Shown piece after piece: positions 1 to 13,058 of a stretch of DNA of 64,000 nucleotides. The notes below the pieces were generated by a model. It had not been told where the DNA came from. It saw only the letters and a list, made by a program, of their open reading frames with translations, and made no database searches. A program made the translations under genes and the position numbers. Every line of letters begins with the position of its first letter. Within the stretch, counting starts at the first letter, position 1. This DNA is from Phaeosaccion multiseriatum (Eukaryota > Protista > Ochrophyta, other classes): positions 186,001 to 250,000 of the forward strand of contig OZ218953.1 in assembly GCA_965112735.1 (NCBI GenBank). Reading direction: 5' to 3'.

Positions 1-76
1 CTCCCATGTCTCCCACCTCTTCCTCGTCTCTGTTCCGCGAGAAACAAAGTTCCGTTGCTGCGCTGCTGAACAGGCT
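1..76 (-). mobile_element. Left (A) end of split-direct-repeat element, inverted, running off the window edge
   Basis: Exact reverse complement of 3661-3736 / 5031-5106 (AGCCTGTTCAGCAGCG...). It joins the satellite at the element's terminal base. Confidence 0.8.
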
Positions 77-2360
77 GTGTTGGGTCGAGCGAAGGGCGAG
101 ATTGGGCCTTTCGAGCCCAACCCATGCCCTGTTTGGCGCCATTCCAGCTAGCAAGTGTCTGGCTCGGGCGATTCGTGCTCGACCCATGCCCGATGTAGGC
201 ACTTCGTGGCCAGCAAATGCCTCGTTTCGGATGCTTGTGCCCTTCAAAGGCCCGCTTGGGGCGTGTTGGGTCGAGCGAAGAGCAAGATTGGGCCTATGTC
301 CTGTTTGGCGTCATTCCAGCTAGCAAGTGTCTGGCTCGGGCGATTCGTGCTCGACCCATGCCCGACGTAGGCACTTCGTGGCCAGCAAATGCCTCGTTTC
401 GGATGCTTGTGCCCTTCAAAGGCCCGCTTGGGGCGTGTTGGGTCGAGCGAAGGGCAAGATTGGGCCTTTCGAGCCCAGCCCATGCCCTGTTTGGCGTCAT
501 TCCAGCTAGCAAGTGTCTGGCTCGGGCGATTCGTGCTCGACCCATGCCCGATGTGGGCACTTCGTGGCCAGCAAATGCCTCGTTTCGGCTGCTTGTGCCC
601 TTCAAAGGCCCGCTTGGGGCGTGTTGGGTCGAGCGAAGGGCGAGATTGGGCCTTTCGAGCCCAGTCCATGCCCTGTTTGTCGCCATTCCATCTAGCAAGT
701 GTCTGGCTCGGGCGATTCGTGCTCGACCCATGCCCGACGTAGGCACTTCGTGGCCAGCAAATGCCTCGTTTCGGATGCTTGTGCCCTTCAAAGGCCCGCT
801 TGGCTGCGTGTTGGGTCGAGCGAAGGGCAAGATTGGGCCTTTCGAGCCCAGCCCATGCCCTGTTTGGCGTCATTCCAGCTAGCAAGTGTCTGGCTCGGGC
901 GATTCGTGCTCGACCCATGCCCGATGTGGGCACTTCGTGGCCAGCAAATGCCTCGTTTCGGCTGCTTGTGCCCTTCAAAGGCCCGCTTGGGGCGTGTTGG
1001 GTCGAGCGAAGGGCGAGATTGGGCCTTTCGAGCCCAACCCATGCCCTGTTTGGCGCCATTCCAGCTAGCAAGTGTCTGGCTCGGGCGATTCGTGCTCGAC
1101 CCATGCCCGATGTAGGCACTTCGTGGCCAGCAAATGCCTCGTTTCGGATGCTTGTGCCCTTCCAAGGCCCGCTTGGGGCGTGTTGGGTCGAGCGAAGAGC
1201 AAGATTGGGCCTATGTCCTGTTTGGCGTCATTCCAGCTAGCAAGTGTCTGAGTTGGGCCTTTCGTGCTCGACCCATGCCCGATGTAGGCACTTCGTGGCC
1301 AGCAAATGCCTCGTTTCGGATGCTTGTGCCCTTCCAAGGCCCGCTTGGGGGGCGTGTTGGCTGGGTCGAGCGAAGGGCGAGATTGGGCCTTTCGAGCCCA
1401 GTCCATGCCCTGTTTGGCGCCATTCCAGCTAGCAAGTGTCTGGCTCGGGCGATTCGTGCTCGACCCATGCCTGATGTGGGCACTTCGTGGCCAGCAAATG
1501 CCTCGTTTCGGATGCTTGTGCCCTTCCAAGGCCCGCTTGGGGCGTGTTGGGTCGAGCGAAGAGCAAGATTGGGCCTTTTGAGCCCAGTCCATGCCCTGTT
1601 TGGCGCCATTCCAGCTAGCAAGTGTCTGGCTCGGGCGATTCGTGCTCGACCCATGCCCGATGTGGGCACTTCGTGGCCAGCAAATGCCTCGTTTCGGATG
1701 CTTGTGCCCTTCCAAGGCCCGCTTGGGGCGTGTTGGGTCGAGCGAAGAGCAAGATTGGGCCTTTTGAGCCCAGTCCATGCCCTGTTTGGCGTCATTCCAG
1801 CTAGCAAGTGTCTGAGTTGGGCCTTTCGTGCTCGACCCATGCCCGATGTAGGCACTTCGTGGCCAGCAAATGCCTCGTTTCGGATGCTTGTGCCCTTCAA
1901 ATGCCCGTTTGGGGGGCGTGTTGGCTGGGTCGAGCGAAGGGCGAGATTGGGCCTTTCGAGCCCAGTCCATGCCGTGTTTGGCGCCATTCCAGCTAGCAAG
2001 TGTCTGGCTCGGGCGATTCGTGCTCGACCCATGCCCGACGTAGGCACTTCGTGGCCAGCAAATGCCTCGTTTCGGATGCTTGTGCCCTTCCAAGGCCCGC
2101 TTGGGGCGTTTTGGGTCGAGCGAAGAGCAAGATTGGGCCTTTTGAGCCCAGTCCATGCCCTGTTTGGCGCCATTCCAGCTAGCAAGTGTCTGAGTTGGGC
2201 CTTTCGTGCTCGACCCATGCCCCACGTAGGCACTTCGTGGCCAGCAAATGCCTCGTTTCGGCTGCTTGTGCCCTCCAAAGGCCCGCTTGGGGCGTGTTGG
2301 GTCGAGCGAAGAGCAAGATTGGGCCTTTTGAGCCCAGTCCATGCCCTGTTTGGCGCCATT
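77..2360 (+). repeat. 186-bp tandem satellite array (~12 units, with 172- and 192-bp variants)
   Basis: Unit ...TTGGGTCGAGCGAAGGGCRAGATTGGGCCTTTCGAGCCCAG...CCAGCTAGCAAGTGTCT...GCTCGACCCATGCCCG...GGCCAGCAAATGCCTCGTTTCGG... recurs every 186 bp. Confidence 0.97.
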
Positions 2361-4596
2361 GGAGGATGGGAGAGAACAGGGCTTGTGGCTCGCTCTGCTT
2401 GCACGACTTACTTCCGGTAGTATGGATGGACTACCCTCTTGCTATCGTGCTCGGTGGTCGAGGGATTGGTGCCGCCGCGCTTGAGATATCGGACTTGTTC
2501 ATTTTTCGGGCCCGCAGCACCGAGGTGTTTGGCATTCGCTGTATTGCTCAGCTGGTACAGCGGAAGTCCACGGCGGACGGTTGGAATCGCCGCAGAGTGG
2601 TCTTGGTACGGCGTGTGCAGAAGGGTAACTTCTACGAGTTGATGTTCGAAGAGCTTGGAGCGGAAAACATGAGCGCTTCTGTGAGGGCATTTTCGGCTTT
2701 TCTACAGGGGTTGGATATATGGACACTTTTGGATCTGTGATTCCGAAAAGAATCCGAATTTGCTGGTTTGGGCGCGCTTTGCTGCTTCCACCCGCCGTGC
2801 CAGAGGACTGCGCAGTGTATTTCGCTCAGTGGCTCGCCCCCCCCCCAGCACACCATCCCAAGCGAGTGGGGGGTGTGTGATGGTCAGCAGGGGGCGTGCG
2901 AAGGGACCTCTTCAAAGGACACTGAATCTGCCCGTGGCGACACCAGCGGCTCCTCCCTCGCCATCATTCCTCCCCCAGCAGCGGGGAGCGCAGCCCTTGG
3001 CAACAGCACCAGCAGCCCTACACCGGTACACGCGGCGGGTGTTTGTATGTGTGTGTGTACTGGTGTGCGTCTGTGTCTACTGTTGCCCCTGTATGTGTAT
3101 TATTTTGTCTGTGTGCGTATGAATGTTTGTGTATCTTTGTGTTTTGTGTACCGGCCGACTACGATCGGGAGAGTGGGCTCCCGACTAGGCTGGGGCAGGT
3201 GCTGCTGCACCCTCGCAGCGCACCGGTGGGTACTCGGATGGGTGGGGGTGAAGCGGGACTTGGGGTGCTCACTGCGGTGGCACCCCAAGCTCCACTACAT
3301 CCGAAACCCGGTGCCCGCCTCCCTCCATGGAGGCGGCCCCCTTGGAGGCGCTCTGCGCTCCCAAGGTGGGAGTCCCTCACGGGACTGCCCCCCCCTACTA
3401 ATGATGAGTCCTTCCCCCAACGTTAGCTACCCCTGGTCCACGACCTCTCCACCTGCGGAGCAGGTGGCCACTTGGGAGTCCAGCCCTATTCCTCTTGGCC
3501 TCGAACAGCCGGCTACGGCGTGGATGTGGATAGTCCTCAGCTTGCATACTGCGACGCCTTGGAGCGGGAGTCGGACATCTCCCGGGCCCTCGCCTACGAC
3601 TGAAGGGAGGAGGCCTCTCACTGGCTTCCCACCTTCGCCCGAGCGCCGCGACGGCGCGAAAGCCTGTTCAGCAGCGCAGCAACGGAACTTTGTTTCTCGC
3701 GGAACAGAGACGAGGAAGAGGTGGGAGACATGGGAGCCAGCAGGGCGAAGCGTCAGCGTAGGTGCTTGGTACCGCCCCAAGGGGGGGGGTCCCCTCTGGG
3801 GAGATGTACAGTATGTCAGTGAAGCAGGGAATTTAGATTTTTCAGAAGAGGAGAGACCTTGGCGTGTGCTGTCACTTACTGAGGCGCCGGAGACAGAGCC
3901 CAGGAAGAGTGGAGCACACTGTCAAGGAGGAGAGTAGATACTGGTGTGGTGGAAAGCGAGCCTCTTGTCCTGGGCCCGGACAGAGCGCTTGTGTCGGCCA
4001 AGGGGACCCGCCTGGTGTTGAGTACCGGGGTCCTCGTGGGCGAGGGAAGGAGAGATAGGGAGACTGTGTCTGGTGTTGAGTGCCGACAGTGTCCACGGTG
4101 TTGAGTGCCGGAACTCTTCTTTTCTTTCCCACCCACCCACCCTCAGTCTTAGTTTTAGTTTTAGATACTCATACATTATGGGGGTGAAGCGGGACTTGGG
4201 GTGCTCACTGCGGTGGCACCCCAAGCTCCACTACATCCGAAACCCGGTGCCCGCCTCCCTCCATGGAGGCGGCCCCCTTGGAGGCGCTCTGCGCTCCCAA
4301 GGTGGGAGTCCCTCACGGGACTGCCCCCCCCTACTAATGATGAGTCCTTCCCCCAACGTTAGCTACCCCTGGTCCACGACCTCTCCACCTGCGGAGCAGG
4401 TGGCCACTTGGGAGTCCAGCCCTATTCCTCTTGGCCTCGAACAGCCGGCTACGGCGTGGATGTGGATAGTCCTCAGCTTGCATACTGCGACGCCTTGGAG
4501 CGGGAGTCGGACATCTCCCGGGCCCTCGCCTACGACTGAAGGGAGGAGGCCTCTCACTGGCTTCCCACCTTCGCCCGAGCGCCGCGACGGCGCGAA
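2361..4596 (+). mobile_element. 5'-truncated split-direct-repeat element: internal-B1(3243-3660)-A2(3661-4130)-48-bp spacer-B2(4179-4596)
   Basis: 2361-3660 matches ~6912-8211; 3661-4130 matches 5031-5500; 4179-4596 duplicates 3243-3660. The B1-A2-B2 order is the established 3' end of Ngaro/PAT-type elements. Confidence 0.75.
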
Positions 4597-5030
4597 ATGC
4601 CTCGTTTCGGATGCTTGTGCCCTTCCAAGGCCCGCTTGGGGCGTGTAGGGTCGAGCGAAGGGCAAGATTGGGCCTTTCGAGCCCAGTCCATGCCCTGTTT
4701 GGCGCCATTCCAGCTAGCAAGTGTCTGGCTCGGGCGATTCGTGCTCGACCCATGCCCGATGTAGGCACTTCGTGGCCAGCAAATGCCTCGTTTCGGATGC
4801 TTGTGCCCTTCAAATGCCCGCTTGCGTGTTGGGTCGAGCGAAGGGCAAGATTGGGCCTTTTGAGCCCAGTCCATGCCCTGTTTGGCGCCATTCCAGCTAG
4901 CAAGTGTCTGGCTCGGGCGATTCGTGCTCGACCCATGCCTGATGTGGGCACTTCGTGGCCAGCAAATGCCTCGTTTCGGATGCTTGTGCCCTTCCAAGGC
5001 CCGCTTGGGGCGTGTTGGGTCGAGCGAAGG
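4597..5030 (+). repeat. 186-bp satellite (2 1/3 units)
   Basis: Same unit as 77-2360. Confidence 0.96.
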
Positions 5031-8000
5031 AGCCTGTTCAGCAGCGCAGCAACGGAACTTTGTTTCTCGCGGAACAGAGACGAGGAAGAGGTGGGAGACA
5101 TGGGAGCCAGCAGGGCGAAGCGTCAGCGTAGGTGCTTGGTACCGCCCCAAGGGGGGGGGTCCCCTCTGGGGAGATGTACAGTATGTCAGTGAAGCAGGGA
5201 ATTTAGATTTTTCAGAAGAGGAGAGACCTTGGCGTGCGCTGTCACTTACTGAGGCGGCGGAGACAGAGCCCAGGAAGAGTGGAGCACACTGTCAAGGAGG
5301 AGAGTAGATACTGGTGTGGTGGAAAGCGAGCCTCTTGTCCTGGGCCCGGACAGAGCGCTTGTGTCGGCCAAGGGGACCCGCCTGGTGTTGAGTGCCGGGG
5401 TCCTCGTGGGCGAGGGAAGGAGAGATAGGGAGACTGTGTCTGGTGTTGAGTGCCGACAGTGTCCACGGTGTTGAGTGCCGGAACTCTTCTTTTCTTTCCC
5501 TTTGCCGGTGTTGTGGGGCTCTACGGCTTAGGAGCGGTGTCTGGTGTTGAGTGCCGACCGCCTCCCCGGTGTTGAGTGCCGGCGCCTTTTGCCCTCTTCG
5601 CCCTTTCTTCCTTGCTGGTATCGCCGTAGGATCCGCGTCCGGTGTTGAGGCCGACGCCCTACTCATCTCTCCGCCCTCTCCTCTCTCCCGTGGCCCAAGG
5701 TTTGGGGGGTGTGGTCCACGGCATTTTTTGTCTTTTTACGAGACGAAAGGGGCTCCCGGGTGACGGCAGGCCCCTTAGCTCTTCCAGGTGTTTGTCTGTA
5801 TGTTTGTGTGTGTATGTCCAGACGGTGTTTCTGTGTGTAGGGTGCGTATTTCCTGTGTTTGGCGTGCGAATATGGGCCTCCTCCGCAAAGGAGGCTGGCT
5901 CTGCGCGCGGTGACAACAGCGGCTCATCCCTCGCCATTCCGGCCCTCAACGGCGGGCGGGGCAGTCCTAGGCAACAGCAGCCGTGGTCACTGCCCCTACA
6001 CACGATGTGTGTTTGTATCTGTGTGTGCTGGTCTGCGTCTGTGTGTGCTAGTGTGCGTTTGTGGGTGCTGGTGTCCCTGTATTGTGCCTTTGTCTATATC
6101 TGTGTGCCTGTGAATGTTTGTGTACGTCTGCGTCTTTAAGTGTACCTCCCTTGTTGTTGGAGTGTCTCCCACCTACAACAGCAGTATGGCCAGAAGGAGG
6201 CGTACGTGGTCGCCACTGGGCTTGCCTGCAGTCTCTCTGGATGGGTGGGGGCGTAGCTGACCTTCGATACGGGAGCTCGCACGGCTCACCTCCGGCGGCT
6301 ACATCCGAGAGACATATCGGGCCGAGGAGCGGCGAAGGGAAGGAGACGGACTACAGCTGTACCTCCCTCACCATCTCGAACGCATGGGAGGGGGAGGGGG
6401 GGGGTCCGATGGAGGCTCAGCTCTCAGGACAAACAGCAACCGCAAGGCAGTTAGTACGAGCGTCAAAGGTGGCAGCATGGATGCGAAGGCAGCTATTCGG
6501 GCTGTTGGAAGGAACCGGAGAGCCCTTTGATCGTGGTTGGCGCCTCGAGTTTCCGTGTGGAGCGGATATGGGACCTGTGGCCATAACAGCGAACCGATGG
6601 GCGACAAGAGAGGCACAGCATACGAGGGAGAATTGGGAATTGGAAGGCGGCATTGGGAGTGTACGGTACTCGCATTTCGGGAGGTACGGCAGCGTTTGGT
6701 GACCGTCTACGGAGTGTACGGCGATGTACGTCGTCCGGTGCTGAAGGAAATTGGGGCATTGAGCAATCTGGCTACTTATCTGTAACGGACGGCGGAAGCA
6801 TGATGTTTGGTCGTTCACAACAGCTATGGAGTGGAAGTCGGGGCCTGCCTGTGATGCAGAAGAGAAGGTGATGGTTTTTTCGGCGTTGGGGCTCGTGAGC
6901 GGTGTGAACATGGAGGATGGGAGAGAACAGGGCTTGTGGCTCGCTCTGCTTGCACGACTTACTTCCGGTAGTATGGATGGACTACCCTCTTGCTATCGTG
7001 CTCGGTGGTCGAGGGATTGGTGCCGCCGCGCTTGAGATATTGGACTTGTTCATTTTTCGGGCCCGCAGCACCGAGGTGTTTGGCATTCGTTGTATTGCTC
7101 AGCTGGTACAGCGGAAGTCCGCGGCGGACGGTTGGAATCGCAGCGGAGTGGTCTTGGTACGGCGTGTGCAGAAGGGTAACTTCTACGAGTTGATGTTCGA
7201 AGAGCTTGGAGCGGAAAACATGAGCGCTTCGGTGAGGGCATTTTCGGCTTTTCTACAGGGGTTGGATATATGGACACTTTTGGATCTGTGATTCCGAAAA
7301 GAATCCGAATTTGCCGGTTTGGGCGCGCTTTGCTGCTTCCACCAGCCGTGCCAGAGGACTGCGCAGTGTATTTCGCTCAGTGGCTCGCCCCCCCCCCCGC
7401 ACACCATCCCAAGCGAGTGGGGGGTGTGTGATGGTCAGCAGGGGGCGTGCGAAGGGACCTCTTCAAAGGACACTGACTCTGCCCGTGGCGACACCAGCGG
7501 CTCCTCCCTCGCCATCATTCCTCCCCCAGCAGCGGGGAGCGCAGCCCTTGGCAACAACACCAGCAGCCCTACACCGGTACACGCGGCGGGTGTTTATATG
7601 TGTGTGTGTACTGGTGTGCGTCTGCGTCTACTGTTGCCCCTGTATGTGTATTATTATGTCTGTGTGCGTATGAATGTTTGTGTATCTTTGTGTTTTGTGT
7701 ACCGGCCGACTACGATCGGGAGAGTGGGCTCTCGACTAGGCTGGGGCAGGTGCTGCTGCACCCTCGCAGCGCACCGGTGGGTACTCGGATGGGTGGGGGT
7801 GAAGCGGGACTTGGGGTGCTCACTGCGGTGGCACCCCAAGCTCCACTACATCCGAAACCCGGTGCCCGCCTCCCTCCATGGAGGCGGCCCCCTTGGAGGC
7901 GCTCTGCGCTCCCAAGGTGGGAGTCCCTCACGGGACTGCCCCCCCCTACTAATGATGAGTCCTTCCCCCAACGTTAGCTACCCCTGGTCCACGACCTCTC

Positions 8001-8211
8001 CACCTGCGGAGCAGGTGGCCACCTGGGAGTCCAGCCCTATTCCTCTTGGCCTCGAACAGCCGGCTACGGCGTGGATGTGGATAGCCCTCAGCCTGCATAC
8101 TGCGACGCCTTGGAGCGGGAGTCGGACATCTCCCGGGCCCTCGCCTACGACTGAAGGGAGGAGGCCTCTCACTGGCTCCCCACCTTCGCCCGAGCGCCGT
8201 GACGGCGCGAA
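5031..8211 (+). mobile_element. Split-direct-repeat element copy A1(5031-5500)-internal(5501-7793)-B(7794-8211), inserted without TSD
   Basis: The flanks GAGCGAAGG (to 5030) and GCGAGATTGGG (from 8212) rejoin into an uninterrupted satellite unit. The A and B blocks match those of the first copy. Confidence 0.8.
6400..7291 (+). pseudogene. Possible decayed DIRS-type RT C-terminus/RNase H remnant
   Basis: Frameshifted fragments TARQLV..WMRRQLFGLL, VTDGGSMMFG, VWMDYPLAIVLGGRG and FGIRCIAQLVQRKSAADGWNR occur in the order of DIRS RNase H motifs (TDAS, TDN..A, HIPG..N.ADALSR). Judged by eye only. Confidence 0.4.
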
Positions 8212-8987
8212 GCGAGATTGGGCCTTTCGAGCCCAGTCCATGCCCTGTTTGTCGCCATTCCATCTAGCAAGTGTCTGGCTCGGGCGATTCGTGCTCGACC
8301 CATGCCCGATGTAGGCACTTCGTGGCCAGCAAATGCCTCGTTTCGGATGCTTGTGCCCTTCCAAGGCCCGTTTGGGGCGTGTTGGGTCGAGCGAAGGGCA
8401 AGATTGGGCCTTTTGAGCCCAGTCCATGCCCTGTTTGGCGCCATTCCAGCTAGCAAGTGTCTGGCTCGGGCGATTCGTGCTCGACCTATGCCCGATGTAG
8501 GCACTTCGTGGCCAGCAAATGCCTCGTTTCGGCTGCTTGTGCCCTTCAAATGCCCGCTTGGGGCGTTTTGGGTCGAGCGAAGAGCAAGATTGGGCCTTTT
8601 GAGCCCAGTCCATGCCCTGTTTGGCGCCATTCCAGCTAGCAAGTGTCTGAGTTGGGCCTTTCGTGCTCGACCCATGCCCGACGTGGGCACTTCGTGGCCA
8701 GCAAATGCCTCGTTTCGGATGCTTGTGCCCTTCCAAGGCCCGCTTGGGGCGTGTTGGGTCGAGCGAAGAGCAAGATTGGGCCTTTTGAGCCCAGTCCATG
8801 CCCTGTTTGGCGCCATTCCAGCTAGCAAGTGTCTGAGTTGGGCCTTTCGTGCTCGACCCATGCCCCACGTAGGCACTTCGTGGCCAGCAAATGCCTCGTT
8901 TCGGCTGCTTGTGCCCTCCAAAGGCCCGCTTGGGGCGTGTTGGGTCGAGCGAAGGGCAAGATTGGGCCTTTCGAGCCCAGCCCATGC
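8212..8987 (+). repeat. 186-bp satellite (~4 units)
   Basis: Same unit. Confidence 0.96.
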
Positions 8988-9210
8988 CTCAGTAAGTGAC
9001 AGCGCACGCCAAGGTCTCTCCTCTTCTGAAAAATCTAAATACCCTGCTTCACTGACATACTGTACATCTCCCCAGAGGGGACTTTCCCCCTTGGGGCGGT
9101 ACCAAGCACCTACGCTGACGCTTCGCCCTGCTGGCTCCCATGTCTCCCACCTCTTCCTCGTCTCTGTTCCGCGAGAAACAAAGTTCCGTTGCTGCGCTGC
9201 TGAACAGGCT
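8988..9210 (-). mobile_element. Inverted truncated A end of the element
   Basis: Reverse complement of ~5031-5253 with a few substitutions. Confidence 0.85.
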
Positions 9211-11620
9211 TTCGCTCGACCCAACACGCCCCAAACGGGCCTTGGAAGGGCACAAGCATCCGAAACGAGGCATTTGCTGGCCACGAAGTGCCTACATCGG
9301 GCATGGGTCGAGCACGAATCGCCCGAGCCAGACACTTGCTAGATGGAATGGCGACAAACAGGGCATGGACTGGGCTCGAAAGGCCCAATCTCGCCCTTCG
9401 CTCGACCCAACACGCCCCAAGCGGGCCTTGGAAGGGCACAAGCATCCGAAACGAGGCATTTGCTGGCCACGAAGTGCCCACATCAGGCATGGGTCGAGCA
9501 CGAATCGCCCGAGCCAGACACTTGCTAGCTGGAATGGCGCCAAACAGGGCATGGACTGGGCTCAAAAGGCCCAATCTTGCTCTTCGCTCGACCCAACACG
9601 CCCCAAGCGGGCATTTGAAGGGCACAAGCATCCGAAACGAGGCATTTGCTGGCCACGAAGTGCCTACATCGGGCATGGGTCGAGCACGAATCGCCCGAGC
9701 CAGACACTTGCTAGCTGGAATAGCGCCAAACAGGGCATGGACTGGGCTCGAAAGGCCCAATCTTGCCCTTCGCTCGACCCTACACGCCCCAAGCGGGCCT
9801 TGGAAGGGCACAAGCATCCGAAACGAGGCATTTGCTGGCCACGAAGTGCCTACATCGGGCATGGGTCGAGCACGAATCGCCCGAGCCAGACACTTGCTAG
9901 CTGGAATGGCGCCAAACAGGGCATGGACTGGGCTCGAAAGGCCCAATCTCGCCCTTCGCTCGACCCAGCCAACACGCCCCCCAAACGGGCATTTGAAGGG
10001 CACAAGCATCCGAAACGAGGCATTTGCTGGCCACGAAGTGCCTACATCGGGCATGGGTCGAGCACGAAAGGCCCAACTCAGACACTTGCTAGCTGGAATG
10101 GCGCCAAACAGGGCATGGACTGGGCTCAAAAGGCCCAATCTTGCTCTTCGCTCGACCCAACACGCCCCAAGCGGGCCTTGGAAGGGCACAAGCATCCGAA
10201 ACGAGGCATTCCCTGGCCACGAAGTGCCCACATCGGGCATGGGTCGAGCACGAATCGCCCGAGCCAGACACTTGCTAGCTGGAATGGCGCCAAACAGGGC
10301 ATGGACTGGGCTCAAAAGGCCCAATCTTGCTCTTCGCTCGACCCAACACGCCCCAAGCGGGCCTTGGAAGGGCACAAGCATCCGAAACGAGGCATTTGCT
10401 GGCCACGAAGTGCCCACATCAGGCATGGGTCGAGCACGAATCGCCCGAGCCAGACACTTGCTAGCTGGAATGGCGCCAAACAGGGCATGGACTGGGCTCG
10501 AAAGGCCCAATCTCGCCCTTCGCTCGACCCAGCCAACACGCCCCCCAAACGGGCATTTGAAGGGCACAAGCATCCGAAACGAGGCATTTGCTGGCCACGA
10601 AGTGCCTACATCGGGCATGGGTCGAGCACGAAAGGCCCAACTCAGACACTTGCTAGCTGGAATGACGCCAAACAGGACATAGGCCCAATCTTGCTCTTCG
10701 CTCGACCCAACACGCCCCAAGCGGGCCTTTGAAGGGCACAAGCATCCGAAACGAGGCATTTGCTGGCCACGAAGTGCCTACATCGGGCATGGGTCGAGCA
10801 CGAATCGCCCGAGCCAGACACTTGCTAGCTGGAATGGCGCCAAACAGGGCATGGGTTGGGCTCGAAAGGCCCAATCTCGCCCTTCGCTCGACCCAACACG
10901 CCCCAAGCGGGCCTTTGAAGGGCACAAGCAGCCGAAACGAGGCATTTGCTGGCCACGAAGTGCCCACATCGGGCATGGGTCGAGCACGAATCGCCCGAGC
11001 CAGACACTTGCTAGCTGGAATGACGCCAAACAGGGCATGGGCTGGGCTCGAAAGGCCCAATCTTGCCCTTCGCTCGACCCAACACGCCCCAAGCGGGCCT
11101 TGGAAGGGCACAAGCATCCGAAACGAGGCATTTGCTGGCCACGAAGTGCCTACATCGGGCATGGGTCGAGCACGAAAGGCCCAACTCAGACACTTGCTAG
11201 ATGGAATGGCGACAAACAGGGCATGGACTGGGCTCGAAAGGCCCAATCTTGCCCTTCGCTCGACCCAACACGCCCCAAGCGGGCCTTTCAAGGGCACAAG
11301 CAGCCGAAACGAGGCATTTGCTGGCCACGAAGTGCCTACATCGGGCATGGGTCGAGCACGAATCGCCCGAGCCAGACACTTGCTAGCTGGAATGGCGCCA
11401 AACAGGGCATGGACTGGGCTCGAAAGGCCCAATCTCGCCCTTCGCTCGACCCAACACGCCCCAAGCGGGCATTTGAAGGGCACAAGCATCCGAAACGAGG
11501 CATTTGCTGGCCACGAAGTGCCTACATCGGGCATGGGTCGAGCACGAAAGGCCCAACTCAGACACTTGCTAGCTGGAATGGCGCCAAACAGGGCATGGAC
11601 TGGGCTCGAAAGGCCCAATC
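9211..11620 (-). repeat. 186-bp satellite array in reverse orientation (~13 units)
   Basis: Reverse complement of the unit, with the same 172- and 192-bp variants. Confidence 0.97.
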
Positions 11621-13058
11621 ACGCCCTTTGTCACCCCCCCCCCCCCCCTTGGGGGGGCTCTTGTTGAGAATGTCGTTGAGGAGGGGCCTGCCGCGTGGGG
11701 AGTTAATATGAGGAACTCAAATCCTATGATATATACGGCATGGTTCTCAACTGAGAGGCTTGCTGAGAGCCTCCTAGTGACTGCACGTAGGTTGGTCTCA
11801 TAAGGAAGGTTTGGTGGTATAATAAGCAACTGTCTACACCCACTCTCTCTGTGATAATAGTCTACTCTGACTGCCCTGTCCCTGCCGCCGTGTCTCGGCT
11901 TTGCCCCCATATATGTGCACCTCCCACCCGCCAGTGCACCCTCTCTCCGCGCTGCTTCAGCAGCGAAGCCACGGAACTTCTGTTCTCGCGGAGTGGAGTC
12001 GACGGAGAAACAGGGTATTGAGAGCCGAGGGGAGGTGGAGCTCTCTGATACACATGATGTGCACTTGCATATAATGTGCGTCCCCTCCGCTTATTTCGCC
12101 TACATTATATCTACTCTCCTCCCTGCTCGTGCTCACCACCATCCCTGCTCTCAATCTCCGCCCAATGCCTCGGACATCGCGCCATTCCGCCCCTCTTGGG
12201 TGCCTTGTCTGGCTCGGTGGGAGGTCGCGGACCTCCCCTCACCTTCACATCGCTTTAAAGCTCTTCCATTTCATCGCAGCGAAAGTCCTGCCGGGGAAAT
12301 CATAGGTCGACTCCGTACGGCGCCGTAACTCGTCCCAACTTGCCCGTACTATACCTCCCCTCATGCCTGGGAGTGCCACGTCGGACTGAATAATGGGTGA
12401 GAATAAGGACTTTTCACCATCATCGGTAGAAGTCCTGCGCGCGCTCCGACCCAGCCCTATTCCGGACTTCCTCCCCACCTGATGAAATCCGCATGTCCAC
12501 CCGTGCGTGACATCCTCCCCCAATCAGCGGGGAGTAGTGTAGACACTTCTGCTGTCGATCGCTCTCGTCGCACTCGTTTGCATCGCCTGCTCATTCATTC
12601 TCAAACGTGAACGCAGCTGCATGCGCCGTCCTCGCACACTCCCCACTCGGCTGGCGTGGGTGCAGGAAAGTGAGGGAAAACAGGAAGGGTGTGAGACACG
12701 AGTTGACGCATCAGGAAAAACGGCTCGCCTTGCCCCGCATCCGCCCTCCGCTGCGCTGACCAACGCAACGAGAGAGGCTCCTGACTCTCCACCTTCTGTC
12801 ACGTAGGCATTGAGGCTACTGTTGTGGCCCTCCGCAGCTGCTGGAATACAGGCCAGGCCTTTCTGCTGCGACGCGCTTCAGCTCCTAAAAAGGACATCCG
12901 ATATCATACAGCTACTCCGAGAGCTCCCTGATGCTGCGAGGCAAATGCCCACCGTCCTTGGGGCCTGTCAAGCCCTTTCGGACGTTGCTGTGTAGCTCTG
13001 TAGCTGCTGAGAAAGACGACGGGGTCCTTCAATGGGGAAGAAACGCTTGGTAGCTGTC

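Follow-up and report, generated by a model that had tools for sequence, protein, structure and literature searches.

Cryptons have no terminal inverted repeats (TIRs), carry terminal direct repeats of 4-6 bp, and are represented in stramenopiles by the group CryptonS (PMC3212892). In Chlamydomonas, CryptonF-1_cRei ends in CACCG and targets CAYCG, and inversions have been described between its copies and target words (PMC9977147). In Cafeteria, endogenous virophages harbor 91% of the type 1 Ngaro elements, and AB repeats are also found in isolation (PMC8547959). DIRS-1 fills the heterochromatic centromeres of Dictyostelium discoideum (PMC7192593), and a 2026 atlas describes tyrosine recombinase (YR) elements in the centromere satellites of chordates (10.64898/2026.09.17.752431). 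Replitrons, which have a right-end palindrome, are found in several classes of stramenopile algae (PMC10288648), and ECR-1 of Ectocarpus, a genus whose centromeres are poor in tandem repeats, is a long terminal repeat (LTR) element with an integrase-chromodomain (PMC11541908). Here we describe a 3181-bp noncoding unit, and the 186-bp satellite in which it lies, from the alga Phaeosaccion multiseriatum (assembly GCA_965112735.1, contig OZ218953.1, positions 186,001 to 250,000; this stretch of 64,000 nucleotides is called the window, and positions below are positions within it). An earlier reading of the same stretch (the original prediction) had proposed that a recombinase-driven mobile system inserts repeatedly into the satellite, and we examine that proposal.

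The unit at 5031-8211 is an insertion that was accompanied by no target duplication, no deletion, and no filler. When it is removed, its flanks at 5030 and 8212 rejoin as GGGTCGAGCGAAGG^GCGAGATTGGG, and the rejoined satellite (block S2 plus the first monomer of block S3, 8212-8395) can be aligned over its whole length with 9211-9831 in reverse complement, the only differences over 618 bp being 2 substitutions and a 3-bp indel. The same GGGTCGAGCGAAGG^GCGAGATTGGG is present without interruption in the right arm of an inverted duplication, between 9394 and 9395. It is because of this empty paralogous site that a clean 3181-bp insertion can be recognized, and the perfect rejoining of the flanks without a target-site duplication (TSD), which had been claimed for 5030/8212, is borne out by it. 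The unit would have entered after the inverted duplication had formed, or it would have been lost cleanly from the other arm. The arms also differ in two partial copies, for which we call the first base of the unit the A start and its last base the B end: the right arm is continuous at the site where the left arm carries a B end (4596), and conversely, after ...GGGTCGAGCGAA, the left arm stays satellite and the right arm holds an A start.

We used 5031-8211 as the reference unit (el) in a BLAST comparison with the window, and the junctions (J1 to J5) were also read directly. The window contains one full unit and four partial copies that are 98.2%-100% identical to el, a degree of likeness that indicates that the copies are recent. 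There was no match to el in 9211-64000, a region that includes 52 kb of genic DNA, in agreement with the original prediction that no intact copies occur in the genic DNA. The element copies are listed first and the satellite blocks after them.

5031..8211, plus strand: full unit, el 1-3181; junctions J2 (5030/5031) and J5 (8211/8212).
76-1, minus strand: A-start edge, el 1-76, of a copy that continues past the left edge of the window (BLAST, 100% over 76 nt).
2361..3660, plus strand: 5'-truncated copy, el 1881/2-3181 (BLAST, 98.5%); the next A start follows directly on its B end.
3661..4596, plus strand: short copy with both ends intact, made of el 1-470, a 48-bp linker, and el 2764-3181; junction J4 (4596/4597).
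3661-4130, plus strand: A part of the short copy, el 1-470 (BLAST).
4131-4178, plus strand: unique 48-bp linker between the A and B parts of the short copy, not present in el.
4179-4596, plus strand: B part of the short copy, el 2764-3181 (BLAST).
8986..9210, minus strand: A-start fragment of 225 bp, el 1-225 (BLAST, 98.2%), at the center of the inverted duplication; junction J3 (9210/9211).
77..2360, plus strand: satellite block S1, of which 296 to ~2110 is paralogous to the reverse complement of ~9780-11596.
4597..5030, plus strand: satellite block S2, which borders the full unit on its left; its paralogue is 9395-9831 in reverse complement (98.9%).
8212..8985, plus strand: satellite block S3; the first monomer of this block borders the full unit on its right and corresponds to 9211-9394 in reverse complement.
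9211..11628, minus strand: satellite block S4, inverted; it holds the uninterrupted paralogue of J2/J5 between 9394 and 9395 and the counterpart of the right flank of J4.

Both ends of the unit are fixed. The A start (AGCCTG...) has the same first base at 76, 3661, 5031, and 9210, and the B end (...GCGCGAA) has the same last base at 3660, 4596, and 8211. At 3660/3661 an A start follows a B end with nothing between them (...GCGCGAA|AGCCTG..., the B|A joint), with the same terminal nucleotides, so that BLAST and direct reading together show the termini to be the same at seven junctions, where they adjoin five different partners. The unit was found to have neither TIRs nor long terminal direct repeats. 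The two truncation breakpoints are illegitimate: the left breakpoint of the 2361-3660 copy with satellite (2360/2361) has 1 nt (T) of microhomology, and the inner breakpoint of the 225-bp fragment (8985/8986) has 3 nt (GGC). The two B parts of the 2361-4596 block (3243-3660 and 4179-4596) are identical to each other (418/418 nt), and each carries five substitutions relative to the B part of 5031-8211.

The junctions with satellite comprise four distinct flank contexts: the complete unit (J2/J5), the B end of the 2361-4596 block (J4), the A start at 9210 (J3), and the copy at the window edge (J1, 76/77), whose orientation is opposite to that of the satellite. Because the flanks differ in phase or orientation, the four contexts are not copies of one event. 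Only one copy, that at J2/J5, has both ends in satellite, and it is the sole fully documented insertion. The original prediction had named five element/satellite junctions that use identical element nucleotides, and every one of its coordinates proved correct; its estimate of about four insertions agrees with the four contexts, which do not derive from one duplicated event, but only one of the four is complete.

The satellite shows a recurring word near the points of insertion. AGC(G/A)A occurs at positions 6, 68, and 130 of the consensus monomer, and this spacing of exactly 62 confirms a 3 × 62 substructure of the 186-bp monomer. The cut is after monomer position 11 at J3 (9210), after position 13 at J2/J5 (5030/8212, one event), and after position 134 at J4 (4596), corresponding to 10 modulo 62, where a shared AA leaves an ambiguity of 2 nt. 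These three are all in the same orientation, and J1 lies between 180 and 181 on the other strand, so the claim that four of the five junctions lie close to AGC(A/G)AA, with 76 as the exception, stands. At least three of four random events shared one orientation and a 4-nt interval of the 62-bp phase in 0.9% of 200,000 simulations (p ~0.009), a value that is indicative only, as the motif was picked post hoc and the events are few.

The last five bases of the unit, GCGAA, match the target word GC(G/A)AA, and every B|A joint carries this end word beside an A start. J3 reads GAGCGAA|AGCCTG, with GCGAA both beside the A start and at the B end; this is the sequence expected from a crossover within the GCGAA that is shared by the B|A joint and the satellite. 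J4 fits the end word in part (GCAA), shares AA, and is compatible with a crossover within GCGAA. The 7-mers GAGCGAA and CAGCAAA occur together 63 times in 5.9 kb of satellite versus 20 times in the 52 kb of genic DNA, and the 5-mer GC(A/G)AA is found 211 times in the genic part versus 63 times in the satellite. A target word of 6-7 nt could explain the satellite preference by itself, with no targeting of chromatin or centromeres, and selection that purges genic insertions may contribute to the bias.

The unit appears to code for nothing. A Pfam scan of its ten open reading frames (ORFs) at E values up to 1 gave nothing credible, with no match below E = 0.1, and remnants of reverse transcriptase (RT), RNase H, or YR were not found in these ORFs. 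For a 389-aa ORF that spans the B|A joint, the protein collection contains no relatives. No Rfam family matched at gathering scores, ARAGORN predicted no tRNAs, and a head like that of a short interspersed nuclear element is absent. The A-side region contains five exact direct copies of the 14-mer GGTGTTGAGTGCCG in one orientation at 5384..5581 (el 354-551), and three more, one of which contains a mismatch, lie in the short copy at 4014-4110. The window as a whole has 9 matches versus 0.67 expected, with only one, bearing 2 mismatches, elsewhere, and the array may be a set of protein-binding sites. A diverged internal duplication, which includes TG-rich tracts, relates el 831-1116 (5861-6146) to el 2414-2673 (7444-7703) with 69% identity over 290 bp, and two older, related pieces may have been combined in the unit.

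Two hairpins are predicted in the B part. One, at 7780-7870, is strong (10-bp G+C-rich stem, z = -3.8) and lies at the start of the B part that is common to the short copy. The other, at the B end (8194..8211, plus strand), has a 6-bp G+C stem and a 3-nt loop followed by the terminal GAA; the last 80 nt of the unit fold with z = -2.9, and the stem is also present in the copies that end at 3660 and 4596, but a 6-bp G+C stem is not rare in DNA of 60% G+C.

Public contigs show the unit to be highly repetitive in two samples of the same organism. The B|A joint, seen as a path that goes back 3181, is present in three runs (X3, X1, and X5) from these two samples, and in X1 and X5 the contig over the B end continues into the A start. 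These observations suggest that plain A-internal-B units, arranged head to tail, are the common form, a point that the original prediction had not made. Contig depths in X5 are similar along the unit (A ~4080, interior 3780-4580, B ~3200-3500) and do not approach 2:1:2, and in X1 one contig passes from A into the interior without a fork. We had considered a layout of split direct repeats as the canonical form of the family and marked it down because of these depths; the layout is real at 2361-4596 and absent at 5031-8211. The end of the 48-bp linker is also a loose end in X3 contigs.

Nearly all contigs of the same organism differ in letter from the copy at 5031-8211 at many places (e.g., 5237, 6134, 6297, and 7231), so this copy has changes of its own that the majority of the family does not share. 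Among the difference types in X3 (4990-8260), C>T and G>A account for 32/72. Run X6, from a related organism (organism B), contains at low depth the satellite joint together with portions of A and of the interior; contigs over 7630-8180 (the B part) are lacking, as is the B|A joint, and the satellite therefore seems to be older than the present form of the element. The unit is absent from all runs on record as RNA, and metagenome scans for the B|A joint and for a 22-mer of the A start gave 0 matches. Exact look-ups of 20 called ORFs, nine of them from host genes, showed all of them to be absent from the protein collection.

The first 11.6 kb of the window contain the four satellite blocks, with a 186-bp monomer and a 378-bp higher-order period as determined by TRF. 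The blocks form an inverted duplication, which the original prediction had not noticed, and its arms are 97.7%-99.5% alike; S1 and the reverse complement of S4 agree at 97.7% over 2065 bp, compared with a background of 92%-93% between monomers. An assembly artefact from a fold-back read was considered and is unlikely, as the arms differ by 0.5%-2.3% and by insertions. The center is asymmetric, consisting of 588 bp of satellite and the 225-bp element fragment, and the structure looks like a fold-back rearrangement beside an element end. The close match of S1 to S4 ends within a 70-nt stretch that contains the J4 site. The last ~299 bp of S1 (2062-2360) are closest to the end of S3 (8705-8985) and not to the orthologous arm; one monomer is identical and there are about 5 differences overall, and each segment ends at a breakpoint with an element fragment, the two being offset by 17 nt in phase. 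Where the satellite gives way to unique DNA at its outer edge, 11634-11657 reads ~15 C, then TT, then 7 G.

At least one copy of the unit inserted in the satellite without gain or loss of target bases. The fixed ends, the clean insertion, the joint like that of a circle or multimer, and the end word that matches the target word argue for site-specific recombination in trans, and we favor the interpretation, to which we give about an even chance, that the unit is a nonautonomous element moved by a site-specific recombinase, most likely a YR. The mobile form would carry the B|A joint, as a circle or a multimer, and an enzyme supplied in trans would recombine this joint with satellite sites beside (A/C)AGC(G/A)AA. 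The enzyme would most likely be a tyrosine recombinase of the Crypton or Ngaro/PAT kind. As an integrated copy would end in a perfect target word, later integrations could occur at resident copies and would yield head-to-tail arrays, and with three phased words per 186-bp monomer the satellite would be by far the richest target nearby. The intermediate might be produced from RNA, as in a nonautonomous retroelement of the Ngaro type, or consist of DNA only, as in a Crypton.

Of the published models, that of the Cryptons comes nearest, with a short terminal word recombining with an almost identical word in the target. The unit resembles Cryptons in that it has no TIRs, long terminal repeats, or target duplication, its terminal word has a counterpart in the target at some of its junctions (CACCG/CAYCG in the Chlamydomonas element, GCGAA/GC(G/A)AA here), and rearrangements that include inversions occur at copies and target words (PMC9977147, PMC3212892). 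It differs from them in being noncoding, with no YR gene, in occurring mainly in head-to-tail arrays, and in having its target word inside a satellite, with the one complete insertion 2 nt off the word. Like DIRS-1 it may be a YR element that piles up in one chromosomal domain; DIRS-1 is autonomous, has inverted terminal repeats and an internal complementary region, and has no described fixed phase within a satellite monomer. ECR-1 is restricted to a single domain on each chromosome, rich in repeats and poor in genes (PMC11541908), and the unit may be confined in a similar way, but here the carrier is a satellite and the element is not of the LTR-integrase-chromodomain type.

Several observations weigh against the proposed recombination in trans. 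The events number only four, of which three are incomplete: J4 and J3 each have one intact end and one illegitimate breakpoint, and J1 is cut by the window edge. J2/J5, the only complete insertion, lies 2 nt past the word (its flank ends in GAAGG) and shares no bases with the B|A joint, an arrangement that a strict homology-dependent crossover would not predict. We asked whether heteroduplex in the YR overlap could cause this 2-nt offset and rejected the idea, as a prediction worked out by hand gave GAGCGAAGGCCTG and the observed sequence is GAGCGAAGGAGCCTG. J1 has no target word and the opposite orientation. The 3' hairpin and the head-to-tail arrays are equally typical of rolling-circle elements, and all of the runs are assembled contigs and not raw reads, which makes the junction frequencies crude. 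Finally, the 64-kb window has no recombinase gene, and because the unit also has no coding capacity we can only infer the class of the enzyme. Of the recombinase-driven, satellite-targeted system that had been proposed, the fixed ends, the clean insertion, and, at some of the junctions, the likeness of end word and target word are upheld, but the recombinase gene is missing from the window and a word of 6-7 nt may suffice for the targeting.

The intermediate could be RNA if the unit derives from a nonautonomous Ngaro/PAT-type retroelement of ~4.1 kb with split direct repeats (A1-internal-B1-A2-B2), a subcase of recombination in trans that we regard as possible and hold only tentatively. The 2361-4596 block would then be the 3' part of such an element, and 5031-8211 would have arisen when recombination between B1 and B2 removed A2-B2. 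The block does show the order B1, A2, B2; the complete unit, like Ngaro/PAT elements of the DIRS order, has no TSD; the identity of B1 and B2 over 418/418 nt is what is expected for repeats of one replication cycle; and the structure, isolated AB repeats, and a target preference are all known from the stramenopile Cafeteria (PMC8547959). Yet A2 and B2 are parted by the 48-bp linker, which the long form lacks, the depths of A and B in X5 are not doubled, the X1 contig leads from A into the interior unforked, and the ORFs for Gag, RT, RNase H, and YR that mark this group are missing, with no remnants of the last three found. Doubtful in our judgment is a nonautonomous HUH rolling-circle element similar to Helitrons or Replitrons, in which a Rep protein would nick after ...GCGAA and after a similar target word, and read-through of the terminator would generate the arrays. 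Such an element would account for the fixed ends, the orientation-specific insertion, and the absence of TIRs and of a TSD (Helitrons and most Replitron families have none), and the 6-bp G+C hairpin 3 nt from the 3' end recalls their 3' or right-end palindrome; the B|A joint is the main path in the contigs, and an end word that matches the target word is also expected from an HUH enzyme. The terminal and target signatures of both groups are lacking, however. For a Helitron, 5'-TC and 3'-CTRR are absent (the termini are AG... and ...CGAA), and the flanks at J2/J5 are G|G and not A-T. For a Replitron, there is no short direct repeat common to both termini inside the unit, and an RG ending is found in only 1/4 left flanks (J2), with the ends being GG, AA, and AC, and AA (intact site) at J4. 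No Rep gene was seen.

Two further alternatives were considered. It is very unlikely that no transposon is involved and that a 3.2-kb macrosatellite unit and the 186-bp satellite were merely shuffled by unequal exchange, fold-back inversion, and microhomology joining, with GCGAA serving as microhomology. The inverted duplication, with its illegitimate breakpoints at 2360/2361 and 8985/8986, would fit such a history, microhomology to the B end can be drawn at J3 (5 nt) and at J4 (2 nt), and arrays dominate in the contigs. But exactly one unit, with both native ends, interrupts a site that is otherwise intact, that has lost no bases, and that shows no microhomology, and the same two terminal nucleotides are joined to five partners, where random breakage would give scattered breakpoints like those of the two truncation junctions. 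Highly improbable, in our view, is that the unit is a passenger of a satellite-specific non-LTR retrotransposon and moves by target-primed reverse transcription. A 5'-truncated copy with an intact 3' end (2361-3660) and a cut position that shifts by a few nucleotides would be in keeping with that process, and template jumping, which gives head-to-tail copies in R2-type elements, could be the source of the arrays. Against it, the fragment at 8986-9210 keeps the 5' end and has lost the 3' end, there is no poly(A) or simple-repeat tail, the complete copy has neither target duplication nor deletion, and the 5' ends are precise in four cases.

Recombinase-type elements that reside in centromeric or satellite DNA are not a new idea in general, given DIRS-1 in Dictyostelium centromeres, YR elements in chordate centromere satellites, and the target words of Cryptons. 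In the literature searched, the centromere-type domains of stramenopiles are rich in LTR retrotransposons (Ectocarpus and oomycetes) or AT-rich (diatoms), and none is described as a satellite with a recombinase-type element. If the class of the unit is confirmed, it would be a clear natural case of a recombinase-type element that leaves no scar and whose target word lies inside a satellite monomer. It would offer an account, at the level of sequence, of elements that are found only in satellites, as the array multiplies the target word, and it would be a possible source of inversions and array turnover in satellite domains. A broader interpretation, which we consider rather unlikely, is that satellite and element form a matched pair, in which the array would act as a landing pad that confines an array-forming element to one (possibly centromeric) domain and the recombinase would drive the inversions, duplications, and turnover of that domain. 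If it is true, a centromere-type region would be shaped by site-specific recombination and not by integrase-chromodomain targeting.

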